In this document: one piece after another, positions 943 through 39,795 of the stretch | Layout of the letters: every line of letters starts with the position of its first letter | Position numbering within the stretch: position 1 is the stretch's first letter | Assembly (NCBI RefSeq): GCF_052425735.1 | Contig: NC_135761.1 | Coordinates: forward strand, 8,246,001-8,310,000 | Reading direction: 5' to 3' | Source: Oculina patagonica | Lineage: Eukaryota | Length of the DNA stretch: 64,000 nucleotides | Notes under the pieces: model-generated | Seen by the model: the letters and a program-made list of their open reading frames with translations, nothing else | What the model was told of the DNA's origin: nothing | Database searches by the model: none | Made by a program: the position numbers and the translations under genes

Positions 943-1932
943 TTAACTCTCCTGGGGAGGCTCCACTTCTTCTATGATGATCCTGCTCACGGACTTAAAG
1001 CCGGTATATGCGTCCCCTCGCGTGTAACCCTCACAGGAACCCACATTGAGCCCCACCTTTACAGGACCCTTGTTGATCCCTGGGCAGTAACCCTCAATGG
1101 TTGCTGTACGGATGATGTTCCATTTGCCTTCAGAGTAAACCGCCGTGTCGATTGGTATGGAGCACTCGGCACCGTTAAATGTGAAGAACCATCGGTTACA
1201 GCTAGCTTCTGAAAAGACGCGCATGTTTCCCTGATAAACAACTCGGAGATACGTTCTGTATCTCTGCTTTTCAAAGGCGCATTCCTAATCAGAAAATAAA
1301 ACACACTTATCAACAACAACAACAAGCTTTATTTGCACGACTATAAATACATACAGTATTGCAAAAACATAAAATTTAACTAAAGAGAGAAAATAAAGTC
1401 TACTGATGTATGTATGTAAAGCGAAACTTATAACAATCATAATCATGAAATAGGAAAAAAATGCAATTACGTATGTGTTACTAACATCACTTTTATTCCA
1501 TAGAAGATTATTTCGTAAAGATAAGCATAATGAAAGGTGATATTTATATTTGTTCCCTGGGCGGTTAGTATTTTGCAGTAAGGACGATTAAGATCAAATC
1601 AAGGTTTTTTGGACACAATGTAGATAATTTTTTTTCAATAAAATTGAAAACTTTGTAAAGCTTTATCCAGCTTTTTGGTGAGTAAAACAACGGTCAACGG
1701 GAGCAACGAGACGCGAGAAGAGACATCTTTCTCTTTCCTTTTCACGCTATGTACAATTTAAAGTTTGAAGAACGCTTACACATATTTTGCCTTCGTCGAC
1801 GTCGCTGCTCAGACTTTTCCAAAAACACTGTTTCCAGTTTGATATCTTCCGGGCTTTAGCGCTGTGGATAAACTTCAGCTGAAGAATCACCAGGAAATTC
1901 AGGCAAAGAACCAAATAAATCACCCTCGGCAT
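943..1932 (-). CDS. CTHRC1: CTHRC1-like secreted protein, collagen-less (gene A), 164 aa
   Basis: Exon 1932-1780 (signal peptide + NWKQCFW..DEGKIC, donor GTAAGC) joins exon 1284-943 (acceptor TTAG) in frame. The second exon reads [48 protein letters not shown], matching the CTHRC1 C-terminal domain. No Gly-X-Y repeat. Confidence 0.85.
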
Positions 1933-4029
1933 GACGCTTTAACACTGTCTTTCAACGGAGTATAGTCTAAAAGAGAAGCATAATGGCCACGCTTTAGAAA
2001 CTTGCGTCACAGTGAAAGATGCGATTTAAAGCATTTCGGTTTAATTTTTTCCTACTTTATGATGCGTTTGCTAATAAAACATGGCTTTTTTGAGCTGTAA
2101 GCCCTGTGTTCAGCTTCAAAATGTCAGCAAATCTTTTGAACGGAATGAGAAGAAAAGCAATGCAAATCAAATAAAGTGAAAAGGGGCGTTCCTCTCGGCG
2201 AGGGCAAGAAGGATGGTTGTTGGAAATTGAAGGTTCGTGAATACTGGGAATGTAAAAGTCTATGTTAAATTCTCGTAGGCAAAAAAGCCGGCAAAAGAAA
2301 ATAATTCCAGAAAATCAAAAACTAACTACGTAATAATTCCAGAAACGATCAAAAACCACATTAAAGGGTGCTATATAACTTACCTTGTTCACGGGCCGCT
2401 TCCAAGTGTGAAGTTAGTGTACCTTACTGTAGTGCTAAATAATGAAAAAAAATAATGCATACGGGTATTCGAGGTGTATTTTTGCTCAACATGTCAAGAA
2501 TAACCTGCAAACCGTCATTCAAACTTATCATTTATTAGCTTGCCTAAAAGGTCCGCTAAAAGCTTATATGAGGTGTTTCTAAGAAGCGATACAGGTCTTT
2601 TGTAGGAATGTAAACGATCATTAAGCTGAAAGCTTCAATTCTTTGCACTAAAGGAAATGGTTTTTATACTGACACAGAATCCTCGTTAGCTATTTTCGCA
2701 TCGTTCTATAACATTGCAATCACGTAGATCATCTTACACGTTCAACTGTATTATACTCTGCACAGACCGGCATTAGCTACATTTTCTTTTGATATAAAGA
2801 TACGTAACCCCGGAAAAACCGGTTAATCCGGAATTCAAATGGAACTGTGAAAGGTATCCCGGTGGAATTTTTTTTGGAAAATAAGGTAACACCTTCCAAA
2901 GTATTACCTTTTTCCCGTTTCTCGCGGAATGATCGGAAATTTCTGTACCCTTTGCTAAAACCATGCAGACTGTTCGTTCACAGACAAGGTCGAAAATTGA
3001 ACCAAGGAACACTAAAATTTACCCGATGAGTCGTTTCAAATTAATCCAAAATTCTTGTGAAGTGGAGATAAAGAACGTTTCTTCTCAAGCGGCAAGAGTT
3101 TTTCCCTTGAACTTTCTCCATGGAGTCTCCAAAAAGACGGAAGATAAAATCGAAAAGTTTCACCCTCGATCGCCTTTTTTGTGACCCAAACTTGTCGTGG
3201 TGTTGTCAGAATGGAATATTCAAAAGGAACAGTTTTTTGGTTCCGTACTGTACTGTTCCATTTGTCGAAAAAACTCTCATCGAAAGTTCCATGTAAATGA
3301 TAAGCTCTCTGCATTCGCTGGTGTAAAACTGTATAATCCCCTAGGGTAGAGCTTGCTCTCAATCCATGATCGTCACAGTGGGGTGGGGGGGGGGGGGGAG
3401 GGGGGGGGGGGAACAAAAGAGACACTATTTCAAAGTTAAAAGAAAACAACGGCCGCGGCCACAAATGCCATGGAATTCGTAAAATATACGCGCGTATTAT
3501 CTGTAAGAAATGGAATTTTCAAAAGTAAAGGCTTCTTTCAGAACTGTGTCATTTGTCGAAAAGTTATCACCGAAAATTCCTTGTAAATGATAAGCTCTCC
3601 TTATTCCCTTGTTTAAAGCTGTATATAGTCCCTTAGCGGTAAGCCTGCTCTAAATCCATAAATGTCGCAACGAGGTACTTCTAAGAATCAAACGAGACAC
3701 TATCTTAAGATTAATGAAAGATAAGAGAACACGAAAGGCCGCGGCCACAAATTAATTAGATTCACACTTCTATTACATGCCGGATCGTGCAATTCGTCTT
3801 TAGTATATTATCGATATACTATCTCGCAGTTAAAAAAAATCTTTAAAACAACCGCGACTGCAATATGCGGTCCAATACAGAAAAGATATTGGACCGGCAA
3901 TGGGGCAATTTTATTGGTTGATTTTAGTTATTTACCCTTGACTAAAATTAGTCGTGCAATTAGATAACATGGTCGAATATTGACGGGGTTTCACTGTAAA
4001 CTGTTTCCACGATACAAGAAACCTCTTTA

Positions 4030-4462
4030 AGGCTGCTTCTCATTGCTTCTCATATAATCGCCCCGATCGTTTCTTTCATATCGCTTCTGTCACTTCAAAA
4101 AGTTTTCTTGCGATTAGGGCGATTATATGAGAACATTACTCAAACGATTGCTAACGTCTGCGGCGATTGGGGCTATCACGATCGCTAGGATCGCCCGTGT
4201 TCTATTCTTCTAGCTTCTCTTTCCTTTCTTCGCCGTAGAACTGCAATAACTGAGAAAATAGGAGACCACGAGTCTTGCTCTTTCAGTGAAGGCTGCAATT
4301 GTGTTGGATCTAGGTCTTCGCTCTTATCATGCGATCGAGACGATCATATGAGAACTCCCGAACGCTTCCAATCGCTTCGATCGCCTACGATCGTCCCAGT
4401 ATTAATTTTGCAAACGATCGATACGATTAAAACAATCGGGGCGATCATATGAGAACCAGGCT
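4030..4462. mobile_element. PIF/Harbinger-like MITE (copy shared with 16832-17443)
   Basis: Ends AGGCTGCTTCTCAT / ATATGAGAACCAGGCT, with internal CGATCG-rich repeats. An inverted copy lies in the right arm. Confidence 0.6.
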
Positions 4463-4980
4463 TTGGGGATCCTCGGCAGCCATGCGAATCTTTAACATGA
4501 TCCAGTCGGATCTCAACATTTTTTTGAAAGAGTCCGAATGGTTTCGGTAAATAATGAAACGCGAAAATAAAAGGTATTAGAGCAGGTCCTCTCGCGAAAT
4601 GATCTGAAAAAAAAAAACTGTTGCTGCCTGCCGTTCAACTAAGGTCAGATTGCAGCAGCGTATTCACAGGTGTGCAGGGGGAAGGAAAGGGACAAAGCCC
4701 ATGCAAGAATGGTTGTTAAAGAGAAGGCTGGCCGTGGGGAGGGGTGTGTGTGGATATTTTTGGCTCCTCGGATCACGTTTTAAGCATAAAAAGAGGATGG
4801 GGCCCGGCACTGTTTAGGATGGATTGAAATGGATTGAAATCAGCGCTTTGTATTAATAGCAATGTGAGTGCTTGACACTAAGATTCATTGCTTTGCTGTG
4901 TTTATTTCATCATCGTTAATCTACAACTAAGACAAACAGCACAAAAACATTCCGACCAAGAGAGTCTGATTTTAATCGTG

Positions 4981-7962
4981 CTAGTACTGAGGTGGATCTA
5001 CTTCTTCCACAATGATCCTGCTGACGGAGTTCCAGCCAGTGTATGCGTTCCCTCGCTTAGTACCACCAGCGCAGGAACCCACATTGATTGCTACTTTGAC
5101 CGTTCCCTTAGAGATCCCTGGGCAGTAGCCCTCGATGGTAGCCGCGCGAAAGATGTTCCACGCGCCACCGGAGTAAACCACCGTGTCGATTGGCATGGAG
5201 CACTCGGCACCGTTAAATGTGAAGAACCATCGATTACAGCTAGCTGCTGTAAAGACCCGCATGTTTCCCTGGTAAACAACTCGGAGGTGAGTATTGCTGT
5301 TCCTCTTGACAAATGAGCACTCCTGATAGGAAATTCAAAAAAATCTATATTGATATCTCTTTGTCTTGAAACAAATTGTTCTCGACAATTAAATTTCTCT
5401 GTTTGGGAAGGGCACTTGAACCTAAATCATCTCTTGCGATTTTGCGCATTGTTTTCGCAAAACAAGTCAATTATTCATTCAATGAATTTGCAAATCACAT
5501 ATTTTTAAAAACGAGACGAGCCATTTGAATAAAACAGGAATCAAGCAAGTAGTTTAATTTTTATTTGGTCACTCGTTCAAAAAAAGATTGTCATAGAAGA
5601 AAGTCAGTGAATGGACAATTGGAGCGCTGTACTTAAAGGAGCGATAAAGAAAACTACGATGCATATTAGCTAGAACAGCAATCTGAAGGTTTTAAGCGAA
5701 TTGTTGAAAGTAGAGCAAAATGTGAAAAAGTCTGCCCGACGTATTCAATTTTAAGGTCATAGCCTCGCGTGTGCGTGACTTATAATTCTATCACCGATTT
5801 GAGGGTGGGGTTCTCTTAAACGCACATTTTAACTTGTGATGGATGTAACAGATGTATGTGGCACTGTAAATCGGATGTAAATGTCAAAAATGGTTTGAAG
5901 TTGACCCCCTTTAAGGGAGACGGGGTCCTACTTGAATTTGAATGAAATTTTAAGAGGTTTAAAGAAGGGGTAGAAGAAAAAAGATTTTTTGGAACACCAC
6001 CGGAGAGTTGACCTCCACGCAAGAGCACTTCAGGTTGCCAGGGGACTGTTTTTGTGTCCATCTACTACTTTTTAACTTTAAATTCCAGTTTAAAACCACA
6101 TTAAATCTTCAATTTTTCCTATTTCTCTCAATTTTACTAATCCTTTGTGAAAAAACTATTTCCTTTCAAACATCCCCAAAAATCACCCAAAAATTTACAA
6201 AACATCCCAAAACATAGCTAGATTCATGCAATGAGCGATGGGTTTTTGGATTGCTTGACACGCGAACGAGATATCTCCGTTAAACCCCGGCATGTTAAGC
6301 GGCGGAAAAACGGTCTTCGGGTGTACCCCCGCCTTAATAGCTTCAGTAGGCTAGTAAAGCAGTTTGTAACAAAACTAGATCATTATTTTAGGAGCCTGTT
6401 AAGTTTCCATGGATGTCATTATGTCTTTCGGAATTTGACTTTTCCAAGGTGTGATAGTGCCCCTTTAACTGGCTAGGCTCGCTTTGAAATATATCTATAT
6501 AATTGGCACTTACAGATATTTTTCCGTTGTCCAGGTCACTGTTTACGTTCTTCCAAGCACACTGTTTCCAGTTTGATATTCCTGAGCTTCCGGGAACTCC
6601 CGTTATTCCCGGGTCTCCTTGAGCTCCCTTATAGCCGACATCGCCCCTGTCTCCCTTCGGTCCTTGCAGGCCGTGATTTCCTGGGTTTCCTGGATTCCCT
6701 GGAATTCCGTGGCTTCCTGGGATCCCTGGGTTACCGGGAATACATCCACAGGTCTCACACTGCGATGGATTCTAAAACGTGTAATTGCACCTTGTAAACT
6801 TGTGCTAATAATGTCTAAGGAATTCAGATGCCTTATCTCGAAGGTGTTATGTTTTATTTCAAAATCAAACAACTCTACAATTGCATTTCATCGTAATGGT
6901 CGCCGTACACTAAACTTTAGGGGAATTTATCCCTTTCCTTTGTCTTCAAATGAAACTAAGCCTATTAAAACGGCTTGAAAAAAATGATAGCTGTAAGATG
7001 TACCACGACCAATCATGGCTTTTGTAAATGTTTGCCGAGTACGAAGAAAGAAACAATTTGCGCGTTTATTTGATTCAGTTGTGTAGCGTTTTTGACCACT
7101 GGATATTTAGAAAGTCAGTCTAGCATACCCGTATAAAATATCGATGATAGAGCGATACTGTGATGAGTAAAACCCGAGAACAAAAGACACGAAATCATGC
7201 AAAACAGTGCCAAATGCCGTTAAAGGGACTGTGTCAATGCTAAGTTAAGTTTATTTTATTACGTTTTGCCAAATACTCGCTATGAAACTTTTAAGTTTCA
7301 TAGCGAGTATTTGGCAAAAAAGAGTATTTCTTTGCAAACATTAAAATGTTTGCAAAGAAATTACTTCTATGGATCTAAATGACAAAACATAGCTTCATTG
7401 CAACTAAATGTGTCTCCGAGGCGTTAAAAACACTGTTCCGCCCAACAATATTCCAAAAACCCATATCGAAATCCATTTCAATCTTCGTCGCTTTTGAAAA
7501 TCCGTACCTTTTTTTGTATTTGGTGTGTTATTGGAATGTTCGTTCACTGTTGTAAGAGGCTATTTTTACATTCAACGAAATTGATGGTCATTTCCCATGC
7601 TTAAATTTAGCTAAACTCCGTGACACAGTCCCTTTAAGTCACGATGACTGCTTTTGGCTCTACTCCTGACTGGATGAAAACGCAACGTGTTTACGCCTTG
7701 ATTCTTTTGAGCTAATGTTACACGAGTTTTGGAGCCATTCACAGATTTCTTCGATATCAATTAAAAAAACCCTCTGCAACAACAAGATCGCCATAAAATC
7801 AATGTGTCGACACGAAAATTTGCATGAGTATTTCAGCACTGAGATGATACATACCTGACCAGGTGGCCCCTTTGGTTTCATTGCTTTAGCGCTGGAAATC
7901 AACTGCAGCTGTAGAATCACCAGAAAATTCAGGCAAAGAACCAAATAAATCGCCAAGGACAT
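4981..7962 (-). CDS. CTHRC1: CTHRC1-like collagen triple helix repeat protein (gene B), 235 aa
   Basis: Exons 7962-7855 (signal peptide), 6771-6514 ([10 protein letters not shown] + 18 Gly-X-Y + NWKQCAW..NGKIS) and 5322-4981 (C-terminal domain). All introns GT-AG, phase 0. Confidence 0.9.
7224..7633. mobile_element. Kolobok-type MITE in gene B intron 1
   Basis: TIR AGGGACTGTGTCA / TGACACAGTCCCT, flanked by TTAA at 7220-7223 and 7634-7637. Confidence 0.75.
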
Positions 7963-8054
7963 GACGCTTGAACGTTGTCTTCAACGGAGTAGAATTTTCA
8001 CCGACAGACACAAAGGTGCGAGATGTGATCAACTTTGATTTAAGTGCACTCCCC

Positions 8055-8062
8055 TTTATATA
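8055..8062 (-). promoter_or_regulatory. TATA box of gene B
   Basis: CCTATATAAAGGGG about 100 bp upstream of the ATG, identical in genes C and D. Confidence 0.7.
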
Positions 8063-8864
8063 GGAACATTGAGGCAGGCAGACGTTCTTCTTTTCTTCTT
8101 TCAATAAGTTAAGAACATTTAATTAGGTTTTGCTTATCTAAAGTGGTCAGCCTTGCGGCCATGAAGAATAATCTCTTTGACCTTTTAACAAAACTCCGTT
8201 TAGATATAAATCGTGCCAAGATGTTGAGCCATACGTGATACTAGCCGACATGCTTTAATTTGAAATGTTTAAAAACTGTATAGCACCCTTATCTTCAGGT
8301 AGTCAGTTGTAAATTGGTTTTTATTCTAGCGCTGAAAATGTTGTAAGTCTCACTGCTGTCCCTTTAAAAAAAACAATCCCACCCTATTCAGATCTATTCA
8401 AGCACAGCAAAAGTAATAATTTTAAAATCGCTTCACCCCGTTCCAGTCTGATGAAGTTAGAACTTAAAATTGCCAGCAAGAAGGGCCAAAAATTGTTTAG
8501 TCTTCCTAAAATGATGTATGATGTATGTAGCTTGTGAATAGGCGAGCATTTCTGTGACTGCTTTTGGAAAAGAAGATTCTAGTTTATAAAATTTTATGCT
8601 GAAATAAGACTAATCCCATCACCCCGGCATGCATCGGAAACACTCTGCACCCCGTCAAACATAACTAAAAGTTTATCTGATCTCTTCATGACAGAAATTA
8701 TAGCCAAACTGGTGATTAGATCACCGCTTTGTCCTGATTAAAAACAAACTCTTAAGTTTTAGAAAGTCAAAACCAGAATAACAAACAATTTTCGGCCTTT
8801 CTTGGTGGCAATTTCAAGTTCTAACACCGCCAGACTGTAACGGGGTGAAGCGATGTATTACACT

Positions 8865-10386: not shown

Positions 10387-13300
10387 ATGTCCTTGGCGAT
10401 TTATTTGGTTCTTTGCCTGAATTTTCTGGTGATTCTACAGCTGCAGTTCATTTCCAGTGCTATAGCAATGAAACCAAAGGGGCCATCTGGCCAGGTATGT
10501 CTCACCTCAATGCTGAAATACTCATAAAAATTTTCGTGCCATTACACAGTGATTTTTTGGCGATCTTATTGTTGCAGAGCTTTTCTTTCAATTGACATCG
10601 AAGAAATCTGTGAATGGCTCCAAAACTCGTGTAACATTAGCTCTAAAGAATCAAGGCGTAAACACGTTGCGTTTTCATCCAGTCAGGAGTACAGCCAAAA
10701 GCAGTCATCGTGACTTCTGTGTCACGGATGTTAGCTAAATTTAAGCATGGAAAATGACCATCAATTTCGTTGAAATATAAAAATAACCTCTTAAAACAGT
10801 GAAGGAACATTCCAATAAAAAACCAAATACAAAAGAAGGTACGGATGGCCAAAAGCGACGAAGATTGAAACGGATTTCGATATGGATTTTTGAAATATTG
10901 TTCAGCTAAACAGTTTTCAAAGTTAATCTCGTTTCCTTATAACTTTAAAATTAGTTATAACGCCCGGGAGACACATTTGGTTGCAATGAAGCTATGTTTT
11001 GTCATTTAGATCCAGAGAAGTAATTTCTTTGCAAACATTAAGTTTCATAGCGAGTATTTGGCAAAACGTAATTAATAAAATAAACTTAACTTAGCATTGA
11101 CACAGTCCCTTTAACGGCATTTGGCACTGTTTTGCATGATTTCGTGTCTTTTGTTCTAGGGTTTTACTCATCACAGTATCGCTCTATCATCGATATTTTA
11201 TACGAGTACTAGTATGCTAGACTGACTTTCTAAATATCAAGTGGTCAAAAACGCTACACAGTCAGCTTAATCAAATAAACGCGCAAATTCAATGTTCCTT
11301 TCTTCGTACTCGGCAAACATTGCGGACAAAAGCCACGATCTAGGTCGTGGTACATCTTACAGCTAGTTAAGGGCAAGGGGACTCATATCATTTTATCTAG
11401 CCGTTTTAAACCGTTGCATTTCAAGACAAAGGAAAGGAATAAATTCCCCTGAAGTTTAAGTGTACGGCGACCATTATGATGAAATGCAATTGTAGAGTTG
11501 TTTGATTTTGAAATAAAACCTAACACCTTCTAGATAAGGCATCTGAATTCCTTAGACATTATTAGCACAAATTTACAAGGTGCATTTACACGTTTTAGAA
11601 TCCATCGCAGTGTGAGACCTGTGGATGTATTCCCGGTAACCCAGGGATCCCAGGAAGCCACGGAACTCCAGGGAATCCAGGAAACCCAGGAAATCACGGT
11701 CTGCAAGGACCGAAGGGAGACAAGGGCGAGGTCGGCTATAAGGTTGCTCGAGGAGAACCGGGATTTACGGGAGTTCCCGGACACTCAGGAACATCAAACT
11801 GGAAACAGTGTGCTTGGAAGAACGTAAACAGTGACCTGGACAACGGAAAAATATCTGTAAGTGCCAATTATCTAGATATATTTCAAAGCGAGCCTAGCCA
11901 GTTAAAGGGGCACTATCACTACTTGGAAAAGTCAAACTCCAAAAGACATAATGACATCCATGGAAACCTAACAGACTCCTAAAAACAATGATCTAGTTTT
12001 GTTACAAACTGCTATACTAGTCCACTGAAGCTATTAAGGCGGGGATACACCTGAAGGCAGTTTTTCCGCCGCTTAACATGCCGGGGTTTAACGGAGATAC
12101 TGATCTCGTTCGCGTGTCAAGCAATCTAAACACCCTTCGCTCATTGCATGGGTTAAGTACAAACCATTTCTGACATTTACATCCGATTTACCGTGCCAGA
12201 TACATCCGTTACATCTATCACAAGTTATTAAAATGTGGGCTTTATTGGACCTTCTCTGACCGGGGGGGAGGGCACATAGGGGGGGGGGGCTATGTAACTT
12301 CCAGAATATTGAAGCAATCACAATAAACCTATAGGATGTATAGTATGTCCAAACATCTTTCTTTTGGTATACGTCAAGTGGGATTATGACGTCACATCAC
12401 GTGACAATTACATCATGATGTCAAAACAGCCACCATCTTGGATCCGCCACCTTGGATTTCAAAATTCTTCCATAATGCCAGAAAATCACCCAAAATTACT
12501 GCAAAGTACACGAAATCAATAAAACTGTGCTTAAAAACCGTAAAAAGGTAAAAATTAATTGCATTTAAGTTAATTTTCATTAAAAGAAATACGAAAATTA
12601 CAAATATGGGAAAACATGCCTATCAAAATGCCATTGCCATGGTGATGTCAAGTTCCTGACACAACATCCTATCCTACCAAATTATTCCCAGATAAATTTT
12701 AAATAAACTCACAAAGTTTGGCAGGGTTTGGTTGAATCTTGAAAAAGTTATAAGCGTTCAAAGTCAGCGCGGGCCTCAAAAGCACCCCCCCCCCCCGGTC
12801 TGAATAGGGTTAAGAGAACCCCCCACCCTCAAATGGGTGATAGTATCATAAGTCACGCACACGCAAAGCCATGACCTTAAAATTGAATAAGTTGGGCAGA
12901 CCTGTTCCCATCGTGCTCTTTTGTCTTGGAAAAATCGCTAAAAAATTTGCTCTACTTCCGTCAACAATTCTCTCTCAGTTAGTTCTTCCACAACCTCGAA
13001 CTGATTATCTCGAGAAAAGTTTTTCGTACAGCGGAGCTCAGTTGTGGAACAACTTACCTATAGACCTAAGACAAGCATCTTCACTTGCCGATTTCAAATC
13101 TAAATTAAGTCGGCACAGTTTAAAGTAATATCTAAATTTTAAGTAAATTTTAGACACGGCCTCCATGAAAAGCAGACTTTTCTTTTGTTATTTGAATTTG
13201 TTGTTATTAAATTTTTGTAGTTAGTTAGATAGGTAGATAGTCCAGTAACTTAATTGACTGATGGAAAAATCGTGTATAAATAAAGTTATCTTATCTTATC

Positions 13301-14518
13301 TTATCTTAAAACCTTCAGATTGGTGTTCTAGCTTATATGCATCGTAATTTTCTTTATCGCTCCTTTAAGTACAGCCCTCCAATTGTCCATTCTTTCTTTC
13401 TTTGTACAAGTGACCCAATAAAAATCAAACTTACTTGCTTGATTCCTGTTCTATTCAAATGGCTCTTCTCGTTTTTAAAAATATGTGACCTGCAAATTCA
13501 TTGAATGATTAATTGATTTGTTTTGCGAAAACAATGCTCAAAATCGCGAGAGATGATTCAGGTTCAAGTGCCCTTCCCAAACCGAGAAATTTAATTGTCG
13601 AGAACAGTTCGTTACAAGACAAAGATATATCAATATAAATAGAGGATAATACATGGTTGCGCGGAGATATGAAATTTATCTTGGAGTGCTGAAATCGATA
13701 TCTCACTCGATCGCCGCGCTCACTCGTGAAATATCGATTTGAACACGAGAAGAAAAATTTTATATCTCCAAGCAACCATGTATTATTTTGTTTATTATAT
13801 AAACCTACTAATTACGAGATTTTTAAAGATTTTCCGAAGATTTCCAACGATTTTCCGAAGGTTTCCGAAGATTTTCAAAATGTTGTTCGAAGATCTTACG
13901 AATGTTTCCGAACATTCTCCGAATTTTTCCGAAAATTTCCGAAGATTGCCGAAGATTGCCGAGGAAGATCCAAAGATGTTTCGACTTAATATCGATAAAC
14001 TTTGCTTTATTGAGCATTGAAACATGGCAAACTCTGCGAGCTGATCGGTCAAAAATGATATCACACATGTGTGGATATCATTTTTATCCACACGTGTGAT
14101 ACTATTTTTATTGACTTGCTACCACTCGCTATACCACTGCAGTTTATATAATATATATTATTTTTGAATTTCCTACCAGGAGTGCTCATTTGTCAAGAAG
14201 AACAGCAATACGCACCTCCGAGTTGTTTACCAGGGAAACATGCGGATCCTTACCGGAGGTACCTGTAACCGATGGTTCTTCACATTTAACGGTGCCGAGT
14301 GCTCCATGCCAATCGACACGGCGGTTTTCTCTGGTGAATCTGCGAACATCATTCGCACGGCTTCCATCGAGGGCTACTGTCCAGGAATCTCCAGAGGCAG
14401 AGTAAAGGTGGCGCTCAATGTAGGTTCCTGTCCAAGCATCAGGCGAGGGAACGCATACACTAGCTGGAACTCCGTCAGCAGGATCATTGTGGAAGAAGTG
14501 GATCCACCTCAGTCCTAG
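10387..14518 (+). CDS. CTHRC1: CTHRC1-like collagen triple helix repeat protein (gene C), 234 aa
   Basis: Exons 10387-10494, 11599-11856 (collagen with one Gly->Val) and 14180-14518. GT-AG, phase 0, open frame. Confidence 0.88.
10717..11110. mobile_element. Kolobok-type MITE in gene C intron 1 (same insertion as 7224-7633)
   Basis: Right TIR TGACACAGTCCCT+TTAA is intact. The left TIR has lost its outer bases. Flanks match those in gene B. Confidence 0.7.
12241..12809. mobile_element. piggyBac-like MITE, gene C-specific
   Basis: Ends CCCCCCGGTCTGAATAGGG+TTAA, left end degenerate. Genes B (~5815) and D (~25680) show the empty TTAA site. Confidence 0.6.
12973..13305 (+). mobile_element. 5'-truncated CR1/L2-group LINE, 3' fragment
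   Basis: Peptide LVLPQPRTDYLEKSFSYSGAQLWNNLPIDLRQASSLADFKSKL is typical of the CR1/L2 ORF2 C-terminus. It is followed by AATAAA and a (TTATC)4 tail. Absent from gene B intron 2. Confidence 0.75.
13635..14158. mobile_element. Non-autonomous element with internal TTCCGAAGA-type tandem repeats (family uncertain)
   Basis: An insertion relative to gene B just upstream of exon 3. It has a palindromic 5' part and a 9-11 bp tandem array at 13830-13965. Confidence 0.6.
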
Positions 14519-16317: not shown

Positions 16318-16831
16318 TGATACCCTCGAGAAGATGTTCACTTTGATTTTTCGTGACGTCTTCAAAATTAAATTATGTCGGGGAGCTAGTCGGATTGCAA
16401 GTGTTCGAAATTCCTTCGGCTTTAGATATTTGGAAAACTAACGGACCCTATTACAAGGCAGACAGCAACAGTTTGTTTTTATTACATCATTTCGCGAGAG
16501 GACCTGCTCTAATACCTTTTATTTTTGCGTTTCGTTCAAGATTCACAAACATTAAACAGGCGAAATCAAAAAGTTTTCAAAGACTAGGTAAATATTGCAC
16601 AGAATTCCCCCAGATATTTTAAGCGATCACTTTTGCAAGGAACACAGTTCACGAACTGTTGGCCACACTAAATTTGGATGACAGATTCTTGAATCAGAAA
16701 GTTCAACGTTGCCTTTACTCACACTCCTTGAACAAAAAGTTATTTACCGAAACCATTTAGGCTCTTACACAAAAATGTTGAGATCCGAGTTGATCAGGTT
16801 GAAGATTCGCATGGCTGCCGAGGATACCCAA

Positions 16832-19752: not shown

Positions 19753-22700
19753 ATGTCCTTGGCGATTTATTTGGTTCTTTGCCTGAATTTTCTGGTGATT
19801 CTACAGCTGCAGTTGATTTCCGGCGCTATAGCAGTGACACCAAAGGGGCCACCTGGTCAGGTATGTATCATACCAGTGCTGAACAACAAATTAAACATGA
19901 TACCTCCCGGTATCTGGGAGGCCATGGGTTTAATTCCCGTCGGGGATTCAGATTTTTTTTTCTTTGTCCCACACTCGTGTCATGTTGAACAATTTCTTCA
20001 CTATATATCACCAAGCTTAAAATTTACCATCTTTATTATTTACAACAAATTAAACATGGTTTTTAAATACGTTAACACTCGTGCAAATTGCTTTGCTCTG
20101 TGAATTGCTCCAAGAATCGTGTAACATCAGCTCTAAGTGATCAAGGTGTACACAGGCTTCAGGACTTGACGGCATTTGGCACTGGTTTGCATGATTTCGT
20201 GTCTTTTGCTCTCGGGCTTAATATCACTTATCACAGTATCGCCCTATCGATCAAAGATCATCAAAGAGATTTTATACCAAGTGGTCGAGAACGCTGCAGC
20301 TTAAAATGAACGTGCAAATTGTCAGGCTTTTTTCGCACTCGGGAAACATTTTTATAACATAGCTAGCAGAGCCGCGCAATCAAATTCAGTATACGTAAGC
20401 GTGCTCAAAATCCCGATGGAGCACGCTGATGACGTAATCGACGAGCGAAAATCTCACTGAGTAAAGCTCATACGCTGCGGGTGTTTTGCTAAAGCGATGA
20501 CATATTATCTTCGGAATATGAAAAGTGAATCCTTTCAATATTTTCCCAAGGATACGAACTACAAGGTAAGCTGTTTCTTATTACCAGACGGAGAGCGAAA
20601 GAGAAAATAAATTCGATTTTGCCGTCAAAGTTGTTTGTGTGCTTTCCTTCATTCAAACAACAACAACTAACGTGCGAGTCTCGAAGGACGAAAATCATTT
20701 TTTCACTGCCCTAACGTGGAAGAATGGGCCAACCATGAGTGACAACAGCTCGATGGCACTAAAAACTAGCTGCCTGACGAAAGTTTTCGCGTTTTAAGCA
20801 TTACACCAAAGCGTCTACGGCTCTGTTGTGATTTTGCCGCTCGGGAAAAATTAAAACTTCATCGGGCGCTTCATTCAACTACCGTTTACAAAAATGTTTA
20901 TTTACATCAATTACAAATAAAATCGGTCCACAAAAATACTTAAAACTAAGCATGGAACCGAATTCTTTGACTCTTTTAACCCTTGGAATCTGTTCGGCTG
21001 TTCGAGGTTGTTTTGTTTTAATTTTCTTCCACGCGGGAGTAAACATTTTAATTTTAATTCAGCGAAAACTTGTTTCAGAATCAACAGCAGTATTTGCTGT
21101 TTTTGTCATTTTTTTTCTTCGCTCTGCCACCGTATAAACTTAAATTAGTCAATTTATCAGCCATTTGACACAAACTGCTCCAATCGTGTAAACTTGTACA
21201 TGTGTAATTTATTACTCGACCGCTAAGTTTACGTTCTCACACTGCACACAATAAACAGTTTTTTTTCCGCGGCCGGTTTTGATGCACAATTCCACCGGCA
21301 ATGTTATAAAACAATTGGTTCATGCTTTTAGCTGTGCTCCATCGAGTTATGGAGCACTTGGGAAGTTTGGAGAGCACTCAAGAAGCTAGAGTTGCCCTCG
21401 GCTATCGCCTCGGGCAACTCTTCCGCTTCTTTCGTGCTCTCCAAACTTCCCGCGTGCTCCATAACTCGATGGAGCACGCTAAAGCATGAACCAATTGTTA
21501 ACGAAAGCCCTGATCTAGGTCGTGGTACACCTTATATAGCTAGTTAAGGACTAAGGGACTTATTTTTCTACCAGTTTTAATAAGTTTGGCTACCTTTCAA
21601 TTATTCAAGTCAAAAGAAAGGGATAAATGAAATGAAATGATACGAAAGATAAGAGCCAAATTAAGTTAAATGATATTACCGTTTCACTGAAATCTGTATT
21701 TGTTACCTGATGTACACTGTAAAGGTGGATTTCCACTGTCGCGTTTTTGTTGACGCACGTTAACGTACGTAAAAATTGTAAACGTACGTATAAATGAAAT
21801 TTTACGCGCGTAATTACGTGCGTCGAATTTACGTTGTCCAATTTCCAATGTCACGTTTTTTTCTTGGTATTTACGTACGTTACACGCACGTTTACGCAAG
21901 TAGCGATCGCGAGTGTTTTCAAAAAAGTTGAACTGAGCTCAACTTTTTTCGCGGCTGTCTGCGGTTACGCAGCGATTTACCCAATCATACTTTTGGATTT
22001 TGTCACATGACACCACTTACCATGTGGAAAACCATTATGTTTTAAATTGCCGTCGATTTACATAGAAAAACATTCAGATGTAGAAGCACTTCTCATCGAA
22101 AAAGTCCAAACATTTCCAGCAATAATCTATAGAACTGACTACAGAACCAAATTACACGAACGCAATAGTATAAGAAAACGCCTGGCGTCAGGTCACGGGC
22201 TTTCAACCGGCAATCCGGGAAGGTCGCCTAAAATCTTTTTTTACTTGATGGTGTCTTTCGGAAGTGCCTCTTGGTCATATTCACGCATTTTTTTTTTACT
22301 AGCGTGTGGTACAAAGTGTTTTCATGGCAGCCATGTTGGAAGAGTCAAACAACAAGATATTTGCATAAAAATGTTAATGATTTTTTTCCCAAAGGAAAAA
22401 CAATTCATTGTTTCACTCCTCCAATATGGCCGCCAATAACACACTCTATTCGCCAACTTGATAATTCAGGATGGCGGGCATTTACGTCCGTTCAACGCAC
22501 GTAAAAAAAACGCTTTTTACTACTTTTTTCGCGACAGTGGAAATTTGCCTACGTATCTTTTATTACGCACGTTTTACGTACGTAAATATTTACGCGTCAG
22601 TGGAAATCCACCTTAACTCTGTAAGGACAAGGAAATAAATCCCGACAAATAAAAGAAAGTTTTGATAAGGGGTAAACATAAGCTTAATAAGTAAAACTCA

Positions 22701-24271
22701 CAAATTTTAACGTTTGTTATACTGGGACGAACAACAACCATTATTATACATTAGAATTACTTTGAAACATGTGATTGGTCGAGAGTATTCAGTCAATATT
22801 CAGTAGCGTGTGAACTCGACATGATAATCCAATATCTGCAGCAGATATTGGGTTATCATGTCGAGTTCAAAGTCCGCCTCGTTTCCAAGCCCCTCGTCCG
22901 TGTAGTGCTGTCAAACTTTTGAAAATATGGCTGAGCGATTCGCCTCCGTTTCCGAAGAGGAATTGAAAGTTTTGATCGAGAATAAAGATTGTAAAAACAC
23001 CAAGAGAACAATAAAAGCAAGTGTAAAAATTCTGAATGATTATTTGAGAGAGAAGAACCTGGAGGAACCACAAGATAAAACCGCTTTGGCCAATGTTCTG
23101 ACGAAGTTTTACGCCGGCGCAAGAAAAAGTGATGGCAAATTGTTTGGAAAGGTATAATAAAACAATTATTGAATTTGGTTTTCGCATGGTATCGTGAATT
23201 ATCAAAACCTCGTGTCTGTGTTATCTGCCTCAGCCTTCGGCTTCGGCAGATAACACAGACCTCGGTTTTGATAATTCACGATATCATGCTCAATCTCATC
23301 CAATAATTGCTTAATATCGTTCCGATCACAAATTCTCCGCCACTCCAGTCTCTCCTTGTTAACAAGTTGCTGTTTGCCTAGGATATTTTTAATCAAAAAG
23401 GCGACCATTACTTTTTGGCATCGAAAGAAAACTATTTGTTTGTCTCACGTCAGGAGGAGCATGACAGAAGGATTCGTCTGAACAGTTCTTCCTTTTCCAT
23501 GCAATATCTGAATTTTTTTCGAATTGAACGTTCTACGTCCTTATTCTTTAACATCGAAGTTATAACTTCGTTTTCTGTTTTACAGCCGTCTGAACGAAGA
23601 CGTCAAAAAGGAGAGACAGCGGGCTTTACGTGCCGTCGCCTCACGTGCTTCAGTGAAATTTATCATTTTTGTTCGCATATAAACGGCGCATTTGCTTGTC
23701 TCGCTTTTGAACAACTGCAAATTATTTTTACTTTTTGAATAGTACTACATATTTGTATACCCCTTATTTTTATTTTCTATCTAATTTGTCGCGATTTATT
23801 TCCTTGTCCTTACGTTGTACACAGAATACATCAGGCAACAGATGCGGATTTCAGTGGAACGGTAATATCATTTAACTTAATTTGGCTCTTATCTTTAATA
23901 TCATTTCGCCATTTCGTGTTTTTATTATAAACACGCCCGCCAACCATTATGATGAAATACTGTACGCTTGGAGAGTTGCTTGATATTTTGAGATAAAAAA
24001 ACAAGGCCTCTAAATTCCTCACAAGTGAGGAATAATTTTTCTTTCTTTTAAATTAGATTAGATTTTAGATTCACAGATGTATAGCTACTATGTAGAGAAA
24101 CTGTGTATTCTCTATTTTCCAATTGCCCATAATACACTTTGTTTGCCCCCAAATTTTGCATAAACTATTGTTTTCAAATTCTCTTGGGAGGACTGCATAT
24201 TTCCAAAACAATAGTTTATGCAAAATTTGGGGGGCAAACAAAGTGCATTATGGGCAATTGGAAAATAGAGA

Positions 24272-24324
<53 letters not shown>

Positions 24325-24933
24325 AAATGTCGTATGGTTTTAAAATTGCTTGTTTCAGAATCCATCGCAGTGTGTGGCTAGTGGATGTGTTCCGGGAACT
24401 CCAGGGATCCCAGGCAGCCAAGGAACTCCAGGGAATCCAGGAATCCCTGGAAATCCAGGAAATCACGGCATGCCAGGACCGAAGGGAGACAGGGGCGAGA
24501 TTGGCTTTAAGGGAAGTGTAGGAAGCCCGGGAATTATGGGACCTCCCGGGAGCCCAGGAACATCAAACTGGAAACAATGCGCTTGGAAGAACGTAAACAG
24601 TGACCTGGACAACGGAAAAATATCTGTAAGTGCCAACTATCTAGATATATTTTAGAGCGAGCCTAGCGAATCAATAAAAGGGTCACTACGCATCACTACT
24701 TCTTAAACAATTGTATAGTATGTATGTAATTATACATCGACGCCAGATACCGTTAGTAATGTAATTTATACAACAGTAAATAATGTAACTGTATTGTAAT
24801 CGTATTGTCATATTAGCAACCATGTTTTTGTAAACAAAGTTTTTGTTTTGTATGTGTGTGTGTGTACTGAAATGAATTATAAAAAAAAATCACTACTTTT
24901 AAAAGTCAAACGCCAAGAGACATAATAACATCC

Positions 24934-24967
<34 letters not shown>

Positions 24968-27202
24968 TAATGATGATGATGATGATGATGATGATGATAC
25001 TAAACGAATCTTTAAACAGGATTAAACCATCAGTACTTGAAAGGACTGTTATCATAGGGGTCCTGTGAGATTTAAAAGATTTGAAAAAAATTAAAAAAGT
25101 TAAAACTACAAAAACACTTTAAAAATTTAAAAAGCCTAACCAACATGGGAAAAACATATAAAAATATAAAAAAAACATTTAAAAATTTACAAATAAAAAA
25201 AATGGCCCCTAAAAATAATTGCCAAAAATGGGTCCTTAAAATAATGATCTAGTTTTATTACAAATTGCTATGCTAGTCCACTGAAGAGGCCGTTTTTCCG
25301 CCGCTTATGGATTTTTACGGAAATATCTCGTTCGCGTTTCATGCAATCCATGCAGAAACCTTTCGCTCATTAGATTAAGCTTTTGGACGTTTTGTAAATG
25401 TTTGGGTGATTTTTGGTGGTGCTGAAGGAATTTTTTTTTTCAAAAAAGAAAAAGGATTCGTTAAATTGAGAGAAATAGGGAATAATGCAGATTTAATGTA
25501 GTTTTGAAATTGGAATTTGCAGTTAAAAATTAGTAGATGAACACCAAACGGTCCCCTGACAACCTAGGATGCTCTTGCGTGGAGGTCAACTGTCAGATGG
25601 TTTTCCAAAAATAATAATTTACATCCGATTTACAGTGCCAGATACATCCATTACATCCGTCACAAGTTGAAATGTGCGTTTAAGAGAACCCCAAAACAAA
25701 TCATTAGTTAAACCAGTTGCTTGATTCCTTTTCTATTGAAATGGTTTTCAATCACGTATTTAAAAATATGTGATCTGCATATTCATTGAATGATTAATTG
25801 ACTTGTTTTGCGAAAACAATGCTCAAAATCTCGAGAAATGATTTAGTATCAAGTGCCCTTCTCACATTGAGAAGTTTAATTGTTGAGAACAATTTGTTAC
25901 AAGACAAAGATATATCAGTATTTAGAATATACTAAACGGCAGTGGACAGCGTTTTTTGGCGCGCGCTGATTGGCTACGCAAATTCCGAATATCCTTTGTC
26001 ATTAAAAACTAGCAATGGAATACAGTCAACTCTCTCTCAACGGACACCTCTGTAAGACGGACACCTCCATAAGACGGACACCTGGTGATGGTTCCTGCTG
26101 TTTTTCAGTCATTTAACTGTAACCAAACTCCCTATAAGACGGACACCTCTCTAAGACGGACAACGGACACTTTGAAATCATTAACGGACACTTGAGAAGT
26201 GTTTTTTTTTTAATGTTTTATTACGGAAAATACTGCCAAACTTCGCAAAGTTAGTCCGCGCCCTAAAGATACGTGTATACCAAGCTTACTAACCACAAAC
26301 AATGACGCTTTAACGGATTACTTTTTTGCTTACGTATATGGACACTAAAGAGGTCATTCTCCACTTACAGTATTACAGTTTGTAGAAGCTCTCAATTTTT
26401 ACTTTAAAAAGCAAACACGGTCCTTTTATTATTTTTTTTAGTCTTGTTGCAGTTAGCAAAGGTTTGTTGCACTGTGCAAAGGTTTAGCTTTATTATCTCA
26501 AAATTACTGGTGTCATGTTACCTCGACTCTCTACAGAGCGGACACCTCTCTAAGACGGACAGCTGCGGGCCGGTCCCGAAGGTGTCCGTCTTAGAGAGAG
26601 TTGACTGTATTGAAATTCCGGCGTTTTGATTGGTCAACAGGCAATGGTACATGAGCTCATATACCATTGACCACAAATTTTGTAGCCGATACGCGTCAAT
26701 GAAAATAGCTGAGGAGCTCAAATATTGCAATTATTTGGGCGTTTTTAATAAAACAATTATTTCACTCGCGCTTGTTGGATATGAGAACGTTATAGCCAAC
26801 TAGCCACTTTCTCAGACACTTTCACTGTGAATAGCTGTTAAATATTATTTTGGAATTTCTTATCAGGAGTGCTCATTTGTCAAGAAGAACAGCAATACCC
26901 ACCTCCGAGTTGTTTACCAGGGAAACATGCGGGTCTATACAGCAAATACCTGCAACCGATGGTTCTTCACATTTAACGGTGCCGAGTGCTCCATGCCAAT
27001 CGACACGGCGGTTTACTCCGGTGGCGCGTGGAACATCATTCGCGCGGCTACCATCGAGGGTTACTGCCCAGGCATCTCCAGGAGTACAGTCAAGGTGGCG
27101 CTGAATGTTGGTTCCTGTGCTGGTTACACCCGAGGGAACGCATACACTGGCTGGAACTCCGTCAGCAGGATCATTGTAGAAGAAGTGGATCCACCCCAGT
27201 AG
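19753..27202 (+). CDS. CTHRC1: CTHRC1-like collagen triple helix repeat protein (gene D), 236 aa
   Basis: Exons 19753-19860, 24359-24625 ([10 protein letters not shown] + 19 Gly-X-Y + NWKQCAW..NGKIS) and 26867-27202. GT-AG, phase 0. Confidence 0.9.
20352..21500. mobile_element. Gene D-specific insertion ending in a ~190-bp palindrome (possibly a Crypton-associated non-autonomous element)
   Basis: Interrupts sequence that is contiguous in B/C intron 1. 21310-21500 is an imperfect palindrome (AACAATTGGTTCATGCTTT..AAAGCATGAACCAATTGTT). Confidence 0.6.
21723..22613 (+). mobile_element. PIF/Harbinger deletion derivative with MADF/Myb-like remnant
   Basis: TIR AGGTGGATTTCCACTG / CAGTGGAAATCCACCT with 3-bp TAA TSD. 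Internal peptide [23 protein letters not shown] (ORF 22047) resembles a MADF N-terminus. Confidence 0.75.
22927..23157 (+). pseudogene. Crypton tyrosine-recombinase transposon, N-terminal fragment
   Basis: [53 protein letters not shown] resembles the N-terminal region of Crypton/DUF3504-family proteins. It is truncated by a palindromic element at ~23157-23310. Confidence 0.65.
24107..24273. mobile_element. Palindromic MITE
   Basis: Arms of ~60 bp: ATTCTCTATTTTCCAATTGCCCATAAT.. / ..ATTATGGGCAATTGGAAAATAGAGAAT. Confidence 0.75.
24272..24323. repeat. (ATT)n microsatellite
   Basis: About 17 perfect ATT units, 35 bp upstream of gene D exon 2. Confidence 0.95.
24934..24998. repeat. Compound (TAA)n(TGA)n microsatellite
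   Basis: Direct reading. Confidence 0.9.
26023..26607. mobile_element. Tc1/mariner-type MITE nested in another insertion (~25925-26840)
   Basis: TIR CAGTCAACTCTCTCT / AGAGAGAGTTGACTG, TA TSD, internal AAGACGGACAC repeats. Confidence 0.85.
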
Positions 27203-30803: not shown

Positions 30804-31723
30804 ATGTCGAGGGCGATTTTTTCTGTTCTTTGCCTGACTTTCCTGGTGATTCTTCAGCTGCAGTTTATCCACAGCGCTAAAGCCCGGAAGATATCAAAAT
30901 GGAAACAGTGTTTTTGGAAAAGTCTGAGCAGCGACGTCGACGAAGGCAAAATATGCGTAAGCGTTCTTCCAGCTTTACATTGTACATAGCTTGTTATTAT
31001 GAAAGGAAGGAGAAAGAGGTCGCCCCTCGCGTCTCGTTTTTCTCGTTGACCGTTCTTTTAGTCACCAAAAAAAAAAACTCCCGTCCAATGTTTCCAAAAT
31101 TAATAAACATAATTCGGCAAAACTTGCTCTACTGTAATGGTCCGTACTGCAAAATACCAACCTTCCATCATGCTTATCTTTACGAAATGATCGAATGAAT
31201 CGAATCTATCGAATGAAAGTGATGTAACACATACGTTATTACTTTTTTTCTATTACATGATAATTATGATTGTCATAAGTTTCGCTTTAGTAAAGTTTTA
31301 TGCTTTTGCAATACTGTATGTATTTATAGTCGTACAAATAAAGCTTGTTGTTGTTGTTGTTAATAAGTGTGTTTTATTTTCCGATTAGGAATGCGCCTTT
31401 GAAAAGCAGAGAAACAAGACCTACCTCCGAGTTGTTTACCAGGGAAACATGATTCAGAAGCTAGCTGTAACCGATGGTTCTTCACATTGAACGGCGCCGA
31501 GTGCTCCGTACCAATCGACACGGCGGTTTACTCTGAAGGCAAATGGAACATCATCCGTACAGCAACCATTGAGGGTTACTGCCCAGGAATCAACAAGGGC
31601 CCTGTAAAGGTGGGGCTCAATGTGGGTTCCTGTGAGGGTTACACGCGAGGGGACGCATATACCGGCTTTAAGTCCGTGAGCAGGATCATCATAGAAGAAG
31701 TGGAGCCTCCCCAGGAGAGTTAA
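30804..31723 (+). pseudogene. CTHRC1: CTHRC1-like collagen-less gene E, frameshifted
   Basis: Exons 30804-30956 and 31389-31723, close paralog of gene A. After ATG 31449, CGCGTCTTT is replaced by AT (net -7 nt), giving TGA at 31488-31490. Confidence 0.8.
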
Positions 31724-33477: not shown

Positions 33478-35055
33478 ATGTCGAGGGCAATTTATTTGGT
33501 CCTTTTCCTGAGTTTCCTGGTGATTGTACAGTTGGTCCACAGCGCTAAGCTGAGAAAGCGACTGCAAGGCGCGGTAGGTATCAGTACAAAGAATTAATTC
33601 CACTGACACCTAAATTAAATAATTCAGTTTTCTGCCTGCTCTGAACCTCTAACTATACTAAATTTTAATATTTTTCCGCAACAAGGACGACAAAACACCG
33701 GTTGGAAAGCACAGACGCGCCAGGGGATTAAACTGGAAACAGTGTTCTTGGAATAACCTAAACAGTGAAGTGAACGACGGGAAAATATGTGTAAGAGCTA
33801 TTCATTACAGAACTATGTGTTTGTGAAACGAATGTTCAGTCAGATGAATCCTAAACCTACCTATTGAACTGCTCCTTCGACAAATTTGATTGATTTAAGC
33901 GTGCATGATTCAAGCCGTCTTCTCTGGTCGCTTTAACTCCCGAAGCAAGAAGATGATCGAAATTCAGGCTAGATTGATCGAGACCACGAAACGAGAACAT
34001 AGAAGTGAAACCACTTCTGCTTTAGTGGCGAATTTCTTGGTCTTTGTGATACATTTTAAATTTAGCTATTACATAATTTACACCAGAAAAACTTGAGAAA
34101 ATCTCTAGCTTAAACGTGTAAATTCAAGTTTAACATTTACAGACGTTTCTTGGGTATGGTGGCTTCCCTTAAAAAGAATAAGAAAAAAAAAACGCAATAC
34201 TTTTACCTCGGATGTAGACGCTTTCGGTCGATCCTTCAACACGCGTGTGAGAAATTTTTTTTCTGGTACCCAGCTAGTTTTTGTCTCTCACTGCTATACA
34301 AAGGACACATAAGACTGAAAAAATTCGAAAACATATAAGGAAAGTTTAAGGTAAACTCACCAATATTTAGATTTAAGCAAGCCTAAAAGCGGAGCTCCCA
34401 ATTTGATTTTCCCTGGAGTTTACGATGTGTCCATTCTGATAAATATGCGGCCCGGGTGCAAGACAAATTTAAATCGCTCATGGTTAAAATATATAATAAT
34501 CTTGAGGCAGAACAACTCATGTTACTAAAAATTAAGAGTTAATTCTCTGCTTTCTAATAATAGAAAATAGTTTCAAGATCCCCTTGAATATAATTCGTGG
34601 ACAAATATTCCCGTCTCTCCCGTTTCTTGCGCGAAGTTGTTTCTTTCATCGGTTGCTTGCGTACGCAAATCAGAATTTAAAATTTAAACTCACTATAAAA
34701 ACTGGTTATATATTTTTAATTTCTGCTTTAGGAATGTTCATTTGACAAAGATTGGAGCGAAACACATCTCCATGTTGAATATAAAGGAAACATGAAGGTA
34801 TTGACAGAATCCGCCTGTAACCGATGGTTCTTTACAATCAACGGCGTCGAGTGCTCCGCACCAGTTGACACGACGGTTTACTCTCAGGGCAAAACTATTT
34901 TTGAGGGATACTGCTCAGGAATAAACAAGGGTCCTGTTAAAGTGGAGCTCAATGTGGGTTCCTGTACTGGTTACACGAGAGGGGACGTGCACACTGGCTG
35001 GAACTCCGTGAGCAGGATCATCGTGGAAGAAGTAGAACCACCCAAGGAAACTTAG
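33478..35055 (+). CDS. CTHRC1: CTHRC1-like collagen-less secreted protein (gene F), ~174 aa
   Basis: Exons 33478-33573 (signal peptide, donor GTAGGT), 33686-33790 (DDKTPVGKHRRARGLNWKQCSW..DGKIC, AAG acceptor) and 34732-35055 (C-terminal domain with a 6-aa in-frame deletion). Confidence 0.78.

Positions 35056-39760: not shown

Positions 39761-39795
<35 letters not shown>

Follow-up and report, generated by a model that had tools for sequence, protein, structure and literature searches.

Stalked and stalk-less CTHRC1-like genes side by side in a tandem cluster of the coral Oculina patagonica

Introduction

When genes for secreted proteins with a collagen stalk and a globular head lie next to relatives that have the head alone, are the two kinds the halves of one working system, or kin left side by side by duplication? 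The question is raised by a stretch of 64,000 nucleotides of the coral Oculina patagonica (chromosome CM126638.1 of assembly GCA_052425735.1, approximately positions 8,246,001-8,310,000), hereafter the window, which holds six genes, here lettered A to F, whose products end in the CTHRC1_C domain; B, C and D are long and A, E and F are short. A preliminary description of this DNA had taken them for a paired secreted system in which every long gene is followed by a short partner or the remnant of one. We have determined the gene structures and classes, the duplication history, the conservation in other corals, the purifying selection acting on the genes and the fold of A, and we favour, with a probability of about 70%, a different answer: a tandem cluster of CTHRC1-like genes evolving by birth and death, in which an old stalk-less sublineage persists beside a stalked one and the two do not form an obligate pair.

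CTHRC1 has been studied almost only in vertebrates, which have a single gene, and corals hold dozens of copies. The vertebrate protein is a secreted trimer, with an N-terminal propeptide that is reportedly cleaved off by proteolysis, and has roles in Wnt/planar cell polarity and TGF-beta signalling; we know of no stalk-less secreted paralogue of it. Among cnidarians, up-regulation of CTHRC1-like genes has been reported for the branch tips of Acropora and the pedal disc of Exaiptasia, and a regeneration screen in Nematostella has also turned up such genes; CTHRC1 is absent from the Oculina skeletal proteome paper.

The family has been surveyed by Leclere et al. 2020 (PMC7058181), who described cnidarian expansions that reach 31 copies in corals, tandem duplicates sharing a scaffold in Clytia, Nematostella and Acropora digitifera, stalks of 4-54 triplets and an intron that is conserved close to where the head-coding region begins. 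Metazoan Cthrc1 is defined there as CTHR plus head, with stalk-less heads only in choanoflagellates, dinoflagellates and bacteria; the head is modelled as C1q-like, and the vertebrate gene is a single copy with 12 triplets, located beside FZD6 (PMC7058181).

Results

The window contains six genes with one kind of head, in two classes (Table 1). Scanning it in six frames for motifs returned six CNRWFFT heads, six exon ends of the form GKI(S/C), and runs of at least five Gly-X-Y triplets at three sites only, the second exons of B, C and D. In Pfam, the CTHRC1_C profile (PF25815) matches the last exons of A, D and F with E values between 5e-25 and 9e-31, and the Collagen profile (PF01391) matches exon 2 of D at 2e-11, the end of that exon matching positions 3-26 of the PF25815 profile. 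A tblastn search with the three exons of D as query located every exon of all six genes, B, C and E being assigned by their 80-90% identity to D. All introns are GT..AG, and the annotated GenBank products of 164, 235, 234, 236, 84 and 174 amino acids correspond to our models of A, B, C, D, E and F, respectively. Each gene has an intron in the head that breaks it after GKI(S/C) and lets it restart with EC(S/A)F in phase 0, at a position that is identical in three contigs from other sources (L003, L007 and L008, described below), and each protein begins with M, two to four further residues and a hydrophobic stretch, some 16 residues long, that ends in HSA or SSA. The six paralogs with a shared hydrophobic N-terminal exon and head, as proposed in the preliminary description, are all recovered by motif scan and tblastn, and the Pfam profile was run on four of the heads.

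Table 1. Coordinates of the features in the window (position 1 is its first nucleotide)
Feature	Position	Strand	Description
Gene A	943..1932	-	Short, A-type, 164 aa, intact; exon 1 1780-1932, exon 2 943-1284 including stop
Acceptor-like tract of A	1967-1978	-	Polypyrimidine tract and AG, ending 35 nt before ATG
Gene B	4981..7962	-	Long, 235 aa; exons 7855-7962, 6514-6771, 4981-5322
TATATAA of B	8056..8062	-	100 nt upstream of ATG
Gene C	10387..14518	+	Long, 234 aa; exons 10387-10494, 11599-11856, 14180-14518; TATATAA 10271-10277
Gene D	19753..27202	+	Long, 236 aa; exons 19753-19860, 24359-24625, 26867-27202; TATATAA 19653-19659
Gene E	30804..31723	+	Short, A-type, frameshifted; exon 1 30804-30956, exon 2 from 31389; net 7-nt deletion at 31451-31457, head resuming in another frame to 31720
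Acceptor-like tract of E	30758-30769	+	Polypyrimidine tract and AG, ending 35 nt before ATG
Gene F	33478..35055	+	Short, F-type, 174 aa, intact; exons 33478-33573, 33686-33790, 34732-35055
A half of cassette	524..3382		Inverted match to 29335-32155 (E half), 80.6% identity; self-BLAST
B part of cassette	4640..8346		Inverted match to 10005-14863 (C), 76-87%; also D 24344-27529; self-BLAST
Spacer copy downstream of C	16316..18476	+	Homologous to B-A and D-E spacers; self-BLAST
Near-identical 3' parts of last exons	946-1209 (A), 31457-31720 (E)		98% identical, 5 differences in 264 nt
Microsatellites in D	24255-24320, 24900-25000		Long (ATT)n / (TAA)n-type; intron 1 (5' of exon 2) and intron 2
Tandem repeat array	28426-29005		D-E spacer; unit of approximately 110-290 nt, 71-75% identity
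Ankyrin-repeat gene and LINE-type element	37086-45055, 46886-49630	-	Just past F
Single-exon open reading frame	59624-60832	-	402 aa, several hydrophobic stretches

Between the predicted signal peptide and the head, B, C and D have a collagen Gly-X-Y region and A, E and F have none. The long genes consist of three exons: a signal exon of 36 amino acids ending in KGPPGQ, a second exon that encodes a Cys knot (CxxCGC or CxxxGC), 18-19 triplets and, up to GKIS, the initial 20 residues of the head, and a third with the rest of the head, including RGN. Gene B has a CETCGC knot, 18 triplets, GKIS and KRGN, and its annotation carries both PF01391 and PF25815; gene D (P0207 = ACROYT_G011859) has a CVASGC knot, 19 triplets, GKIS and TRGN; and in gene C (P0209 = ACROYT_G011858) the triple helix of 18 triplets is interrupted by a change of Gly to Val (GYK-VAR-GEP). 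At 4.5 kb, intron 1 of D is longer than its counterparts in B and C (1.1 kb), and long microsatellites lie in both introns of D.

The short genes have zero triplets, a basic linker, GKIC and RGD, and come in two architectures. A and E have two exons and no linker exon, so that the signal peptide abuts the head (KARKIS-NWKQC): exon 1 of A encodes the predicted signal peptide, KARKIS and the start of the head up to GKIC, and the protein is identical to P0206 (ACROYT_G011856 / XP_078368311 and XP_078368312). F has three exons, the first two separated by an intron of 112 nt, and a basic linker of 15 residues that ends directly before the head (KHRRAR-GL-NWKQC), followed by GKIC, TRGD and a deletion of six amino acids in the head; its protein is identical to P0004 (ACROYT_G011861). 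This leaves no room for a hidden collagen exon, since A and E have no intron at that point and F only its 112 nt, and such an exon, the case that would have spoken against the preliminary description, cannot be spliced in there. The linked features that the preliminary description had assigned to the long class (Cys linker, 18-19 triplets, GKIS, RGN and a proximal TATA box) hold in B, C and D, as do those of the short class in A, E and F. Lacking triplets, the short genes encode CTHRC1_C-domain proteins and not Cthrc1 in the strict sense.

The two classes are real and hold beyond the O. patagonica genome, as their markers show. The residue that follows GKI or GSI is Cys in all eight short genes compared and Ser in all long ones, without exception, and in a 50-member alignment of the family Cys occupies that column in two members. 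Short heads thereby have seven cysteines; long heads have six, plus the two or three of the knot. Short proteins also carry a (K/Q)E(S/T/N/I) tail that is absent from long ones. In the F-type genes of four species, RRxR stands one or two residues before LNWKQC (HRRAR-GL-NWKQC in F, HRRAR-AL in L007, YRRER-VL in L003 and YRRPR-SL in L008). This conserved motif of the form R-X-(K/R/X)-R at the boundary of pro-region and head, absent from A and E, is probably a cleavage site for a furin-type protease, as predicted from its sequence. Identity between heads is about 75% for A and D, and about 64% for F and the long heads.

The intact short genes behave as constrained coding genes and not as debris, given ratios of nonsynonymous to synonymous substitution (dN/dS, by NG86) of 0.13-0.54 among A-type and 0.29-0.39 among F-type orthologues. 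The heads of B, C and D give 0.16-0.28, and their signal-plus-collagen part 0.78-0.99. In a tree of heads, the local family forms one clade against the other CTHRC1-like subfamilies (support 100/97), in which the A-type and the F-type group together (86/84).

Same-strand neighbours of the order long-then-short or short-then-short recur in four other coral assemblies. On L003, an ENA contig from another coral, a long gene is followed 1.1 kb downstream by an intact three-exon F-type gene on the same strand. L009 (ENA ERZ25067546) is collinear with it, and here the long gene is followed by just the last 35 or so codons of the F-type gene (L009:6715-7460), approximately 2.6 kb of the L003 sequence being replaced by 0.66 kb. 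L005 (GCA_044670265.1, 97.5% identical in DNA to positions 1-5393 of the window) has an intact A after the long gene B, of which the contig covers only the last exon. L007, a Logan contig, carries two intact genes in the order of E and F, first a two-exon A-type gene with 88% amino acid identity to A and then an F-type gene with 88% to F. An intact three-exon F-type gene is also found on a Tara scaffold (L008), and F-type last exons in at least eight further coral sequences. Long genes without a short neighbour in the visible DNA are those of Desmophyllum (L004), of another Tara scaffold (L006) and of an ENA metagenome scaffold (L010), the latter two being short or end-cut, so that absence there is weak evidence. 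The expectation that class features and pairs would recur in related genomes is accordingly borne out for the features, including the Ser/Cys of GKI and the difference in TATA boxes, and for the pairs only in part: they recur on L003, L005 and, as a remnant, L009, with A-type and F-type together on L007, and the long gene stands alone on L004, L006 and L010.

Pairing as a general rule was also tried at an independent locus. P0028 (ACROYT_G012741), on the same chromosome approximately 8.9 Mb downstream, is collagen-less and CTHRC1-like, and has no CTHRC1-like neighbour within 10 kb. A stop (L011:12196-12215) lies where the near-invariant Cys of the family (EC.F) is expected, and the annotated model bypasses it through another acceptor. 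This solitary, damaged-looking gene is probably a decaying copy.

Within the window, self-BLAST reveals three copies of one cassette with 76-87% DNA identity, B and C matching each other and each of them also D. Of the order that had been proposed, in which each long gene is followed in the same orientation by a short one, B then A and D then E then F do stand on one strand each, but E is frameshifted and the architecture of A and E differs from that of F. Compared with A, E has lost a net 7 nt after ...YQGNM, and the annotators give it a product of just 84 amino acids. The remnant of a short gene that was thought to follow C turns out to be spacer DNA with no exon (tblastn, self-BLAST): its homology to the other spacers stops approximately 530 nt short of the expected ATG and is followed by about 860 nt of unrelated DNA and then by the upstream region of D, and tblastn finds no short-gene exon fragment between 14600 and 19700. 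As B and C stand head to head in inverted orientation, the edge of the C spacer may be the breakpoint of an inverted duplication, and C may have been without a short partner from the start, rather than having lost one. An intact partner is thus present in one of the three cassettes (B and A). Counting the frameshift of E, the lack of a partner for C and the deletion on L009, the short partner has been lost or broken at least three times.

Synonymous divergence (dS) is 0.18-0.23 among B, C and D, and 0.05-0.14 between A and E. The 3' parts of the last exons of A and E are nearly identical, at 98%, in a cassette whose flanks are at about 80%, which suggests local gene conversion, likely between the intact A and the frameshifted E. 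The D-E spacer holds a tandem repeat array that is absent from the B-A spacer.

The promoters differ between the classes. In B, C and D, TATATAA stands 100, 116 and 100 nt before the ATG, respectively, and none is found within 250 nt of the ATGs of A, E and F. The same element, CTATATAAAG, precedes the ATG by 85 to 116 nt in the long genes of four species, including those on L003, L009 and L010, and no TATA box lies within 250 nt of the ATG of the short genes across the species compared. Acceptor-like polypyrimidine tracts with AG (TTTTAG or TTTCAG) end at equal distance before the ATGs of A and E, and are kept on L007.

The RGD of the short genes looks incidental in the sequence comparison. 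It is found in A, E, F and all three A-type orthologues, but eight F-type orthologues have GGD and some long-type genes have LGD, RGD or QGD. In the 50-member alignment, Asp is the majority residue at its site (29/50), the preceding Gly is present in 26 of 50 and Arg in 6 of 50, at a variable position. It is therefore the Asn of the long genes that departs from the family, and RGD does not serve as the marker of the short class that it had been taken for. In the model of A made with AlphaFold2 (AF2), the tripeptide lies in a turn that is short, tight and modelled with confidence, within the motif that the family conserves most, and not in a long flexible loop. By these observations it is not the conserved, exposed RGD expected of an integrin ligand.

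That model, built from a 50-sequence alignment, has a predicted local distance difference test score (pLDDT) of 94 and is an all-beta jelly roll of approximately nine strands, with residues 3-23 as a helix. The best solved matches in Foldseek are TNF-like (probability 1.0, template modelling (TM) scores of 0.5-0.6): the C-terminal domain (CTD) of Chlamydia Pgp3, the N-terminal lectin of BC2L-C, EDA-A1 and Bacillus ExsFA/BxpB. These relatives trimerise through the head alone. The C1q-like model of the Cthrc1 head by Leclere et al. is in line with this fold (PMC7058181). By sequence, a head-only query finds no solved CTHRC1 head in the PDB; the match of the long protein to the 'spindlefibril/axialfibril' entries 8zxl/9ius (1.7e-60) is due to the collagen repeats only.

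Discussion

How could the cluster have come about, and what would its products do? In the birth-and-death history that we favour, a unit of a long and an A-type gene would have been copied by segmental duplication, partly in inverted orientation, to give B followed by A, C followed by none and D followed by E, with F at the end of the cluster adjoining a conserved ankyrin-repeat gene, and the copies would have decayed independently. The stalked lineage (B, C and D) would produce, from a conserved TATA-box promoter, proteins with a signal peptide, a Cys knot, a stalk of 18-19 triplets and a TNF/C1q-like head, and the stalk-less lineage a signal peptide and head only. In the F-type, which keeps intron 1, a furin-type convertase would cut after the RRxR that ends the short pro-region and leave a bare head; in the A-type (A and E), where intron and linker are lost and the signal peptide abuts the head, signal peptidase alone would suffice for release. 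The seventh, unpaired cysteine (GKIC) may substitute for the lost N-terminal knot as a link between chains. The short proteins would then be secreted head-only trimers that act alone, diffusing freely and outside the higher-order assemblies of the stalks, and they may compete with the stalked form for the same ligand without being obligate partners.

The repeated loss of the partner, in E, after C and on L009, argues against an obligate pair, and the different promoter classes argue against simple co-regulation of long and short genes. Some observations weigh against the reading just given. A tree that places the A-type with the long genes, and hence implies two independent losses of the stalk, is not rejected (p-AU 0.39). 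The junction of A (...KIS-NWKQC) is closer to that of the long genes (...G(I/T)S-NWKQC) than to that of F (...RGL-NWKQC), and the last 30 nt or so of its 5' untranslated region (5'UTR) align with the 5'UTR of the long genes; the A-type may have arisen either by a further deletion in an F-like ancestor or by a fresh deletion in a long gene. A mosaic origin through gene conversion was considered too: dS between A and D is below that between A and F only in codons 20-60 (0.39 vs 0.89), and segment-wise dS is too noisy to decide. The conserved acceptor-like site before the A-type genes suggests that a 5'UTR exon lies further upstream and the promoter at a greater distance, which would weaken the TATA-less status of the A-type. 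Finally, full-length searches with A and F found no spliced short-gene transcripts from any species in the protein collections, and returned spliced-looking contigs for long genes only (P0208 and P0210-P0212); the sole hint of short-gene transcription is that two RefSeq accessions, possibly transcript variants, share the protein sequence of A.

A stronger claim would be that selection maintains the long and the short genes together as the two components of one functional module, in which the head alone serves as a decoy or antagonist, or bridges to integrins by its RGD. Same-strand adjacency of both classes in at least three other assemblies, purifying selection on both, a promoter type and a cysteine conserved by class, and the RGD kept in all three A-type orthologues would all fit such a module. 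Adjacency, however, is to be expected from tandem duplication even without selection; the partner is intact in one of three cassettes and mostly deleted on L009, which also speaks against the pair as a functional unit in the sense of the preliminary description; long genes stand alone on L004, L006 and L010 as far as the contigs reach; the F-type has GGD, with Arg at a variable site and the tripeptide in a tight turn; and the promoter classes differ. We consider this module unlikely. Somewhat more doubtful to us is a wider proposal, that in robust corals the stalk-less paralogues are linked soluble competitors or chain terminators of the stalked form, by way of furin or direct release, a lock through the extra cysteine and a switch of promoter.

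Taken by itself, chain termination would mean that short heads join stalked chains in mixed trimers and cut their valency or block their oligomerisation, with the extra cysteine as the lock. The likeness of the A and D heads (about 75%), the unpaired cysteine of the short class, the nucleation of trimers by TNF/C1q-like heads and the fact that the fold relatives of the head are head-driven trimers speak for it, yet the identity of F to the long heads is no more than about 64%, six residues are deleted from its head, partner loss is tolerated, and with different promoters it is uncertain that both chains are translated together in one cell; we hold this version to be very improbable. The opposite view, that the short genes are non-functional, decaying truncated duplicates whose class features reflect shared ancestry, can point to the frameshift of E, the short gene mostly deleted on L009 and the solitary P0028 with its stop at a conserved cysteine. 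Against this, three to four species have intact A-type and F-type genes whose splice sites are canonical, the dN/dS of these genes (0.13-0.54) resembles that of the long ones, RRxR and the extra Cys are conserved, and at least eight other coral sequences contain the F-type last exon, so that of all these explanations we find it the least probable. A birth-and-death cluster with an old stalk-less sublineage thus remains our preferred account.

Where does the cluster stand among known systems? B, C and D conform fully to the Cthrc1 family of Leclere et al. (predicted signal peptide, short variable stalk, head, head intron and tandem copies), and are ordinary members of it. What is new here is a conserved, linked stalk-less sublineage with markers of its own: it differs from that family in adjoining stalked genes, with its own promoter type, an extra cysteine and, in the F-type, RRxR, and it is kept in several corals. 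The likeness to vertebrate CTHRC1 consists in the PF25815 head and the collagen stalk.

Public annotation contains further collagen-less CTHRC1-like proteins, namely XP_031563571 and XP_031574724 of Actinia tenebrosa, XP_068748771 of Montipora capricornis, an isoform X2 of Dendronephthya gigantea, and XP_078345573 and XP_078345574 of Oculina, and of the family representatives in which the start of the head can be recognised, about a third have no triplets. Like our short genes, the proteins named combine a PF25815 head with a predicted signal peptide and a short linker, Cys-rich or basic, but they belong to other subfamilies and lack the extra cysteine of GKIC.

Jelly-roll heads that form trimers, with a stalk (C1q, collagens VIII and X, adiponectin) or without one (cerebellins, TNF ligands), also occur in the C1q/TNF superfamily, and TNF ligands such as EDA have their heads released by furin. 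The CTHRC1 head has, however, no sequence similarity to C1q or TNF domains, its TM scores are only 0.5-0.6, and it has been modelled here as a monomer.

As it stands, this finding describes a variant of a gene family and not a new mechanism. A conserved stalk-less sublineage would nevertheless be a natural experiment on what the stalk contributes, and head-only proteins are small, simple reagents for finding the ligand of the CTHRC1 head. Were the two forms mutual antagonists, this would bear on tissue growth, repair and attachment in corals, and if the competitor or terminator proposal were true, agonist and antagonist would be genetically linked as a pair within a matrix or Wnt-modulating family.

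Other features of the window

The cluster is flanked on the side of A, before the window starts, by a gene for a MatE-family transporter of 421 amino acids (L001:12818-18778). Past F, the ankyrin-repeat gene contains or adjoins a LINE-type element, whose 914-aa open reading frame encodes an endonuclease and a reverse transcriptase; in the annotation, gene and element are fused into one product of 1829 amino acids. In Desmophyllum (L004) and on the Tara scaffold L006, too, the CTHRC1-like gene is followed by one with ankyrin repeats, so that this neighbour is syntenic. Further along, the single-exon open reading frame in the last row of Table 1 possibly encodes a multi-pass membrane protein.

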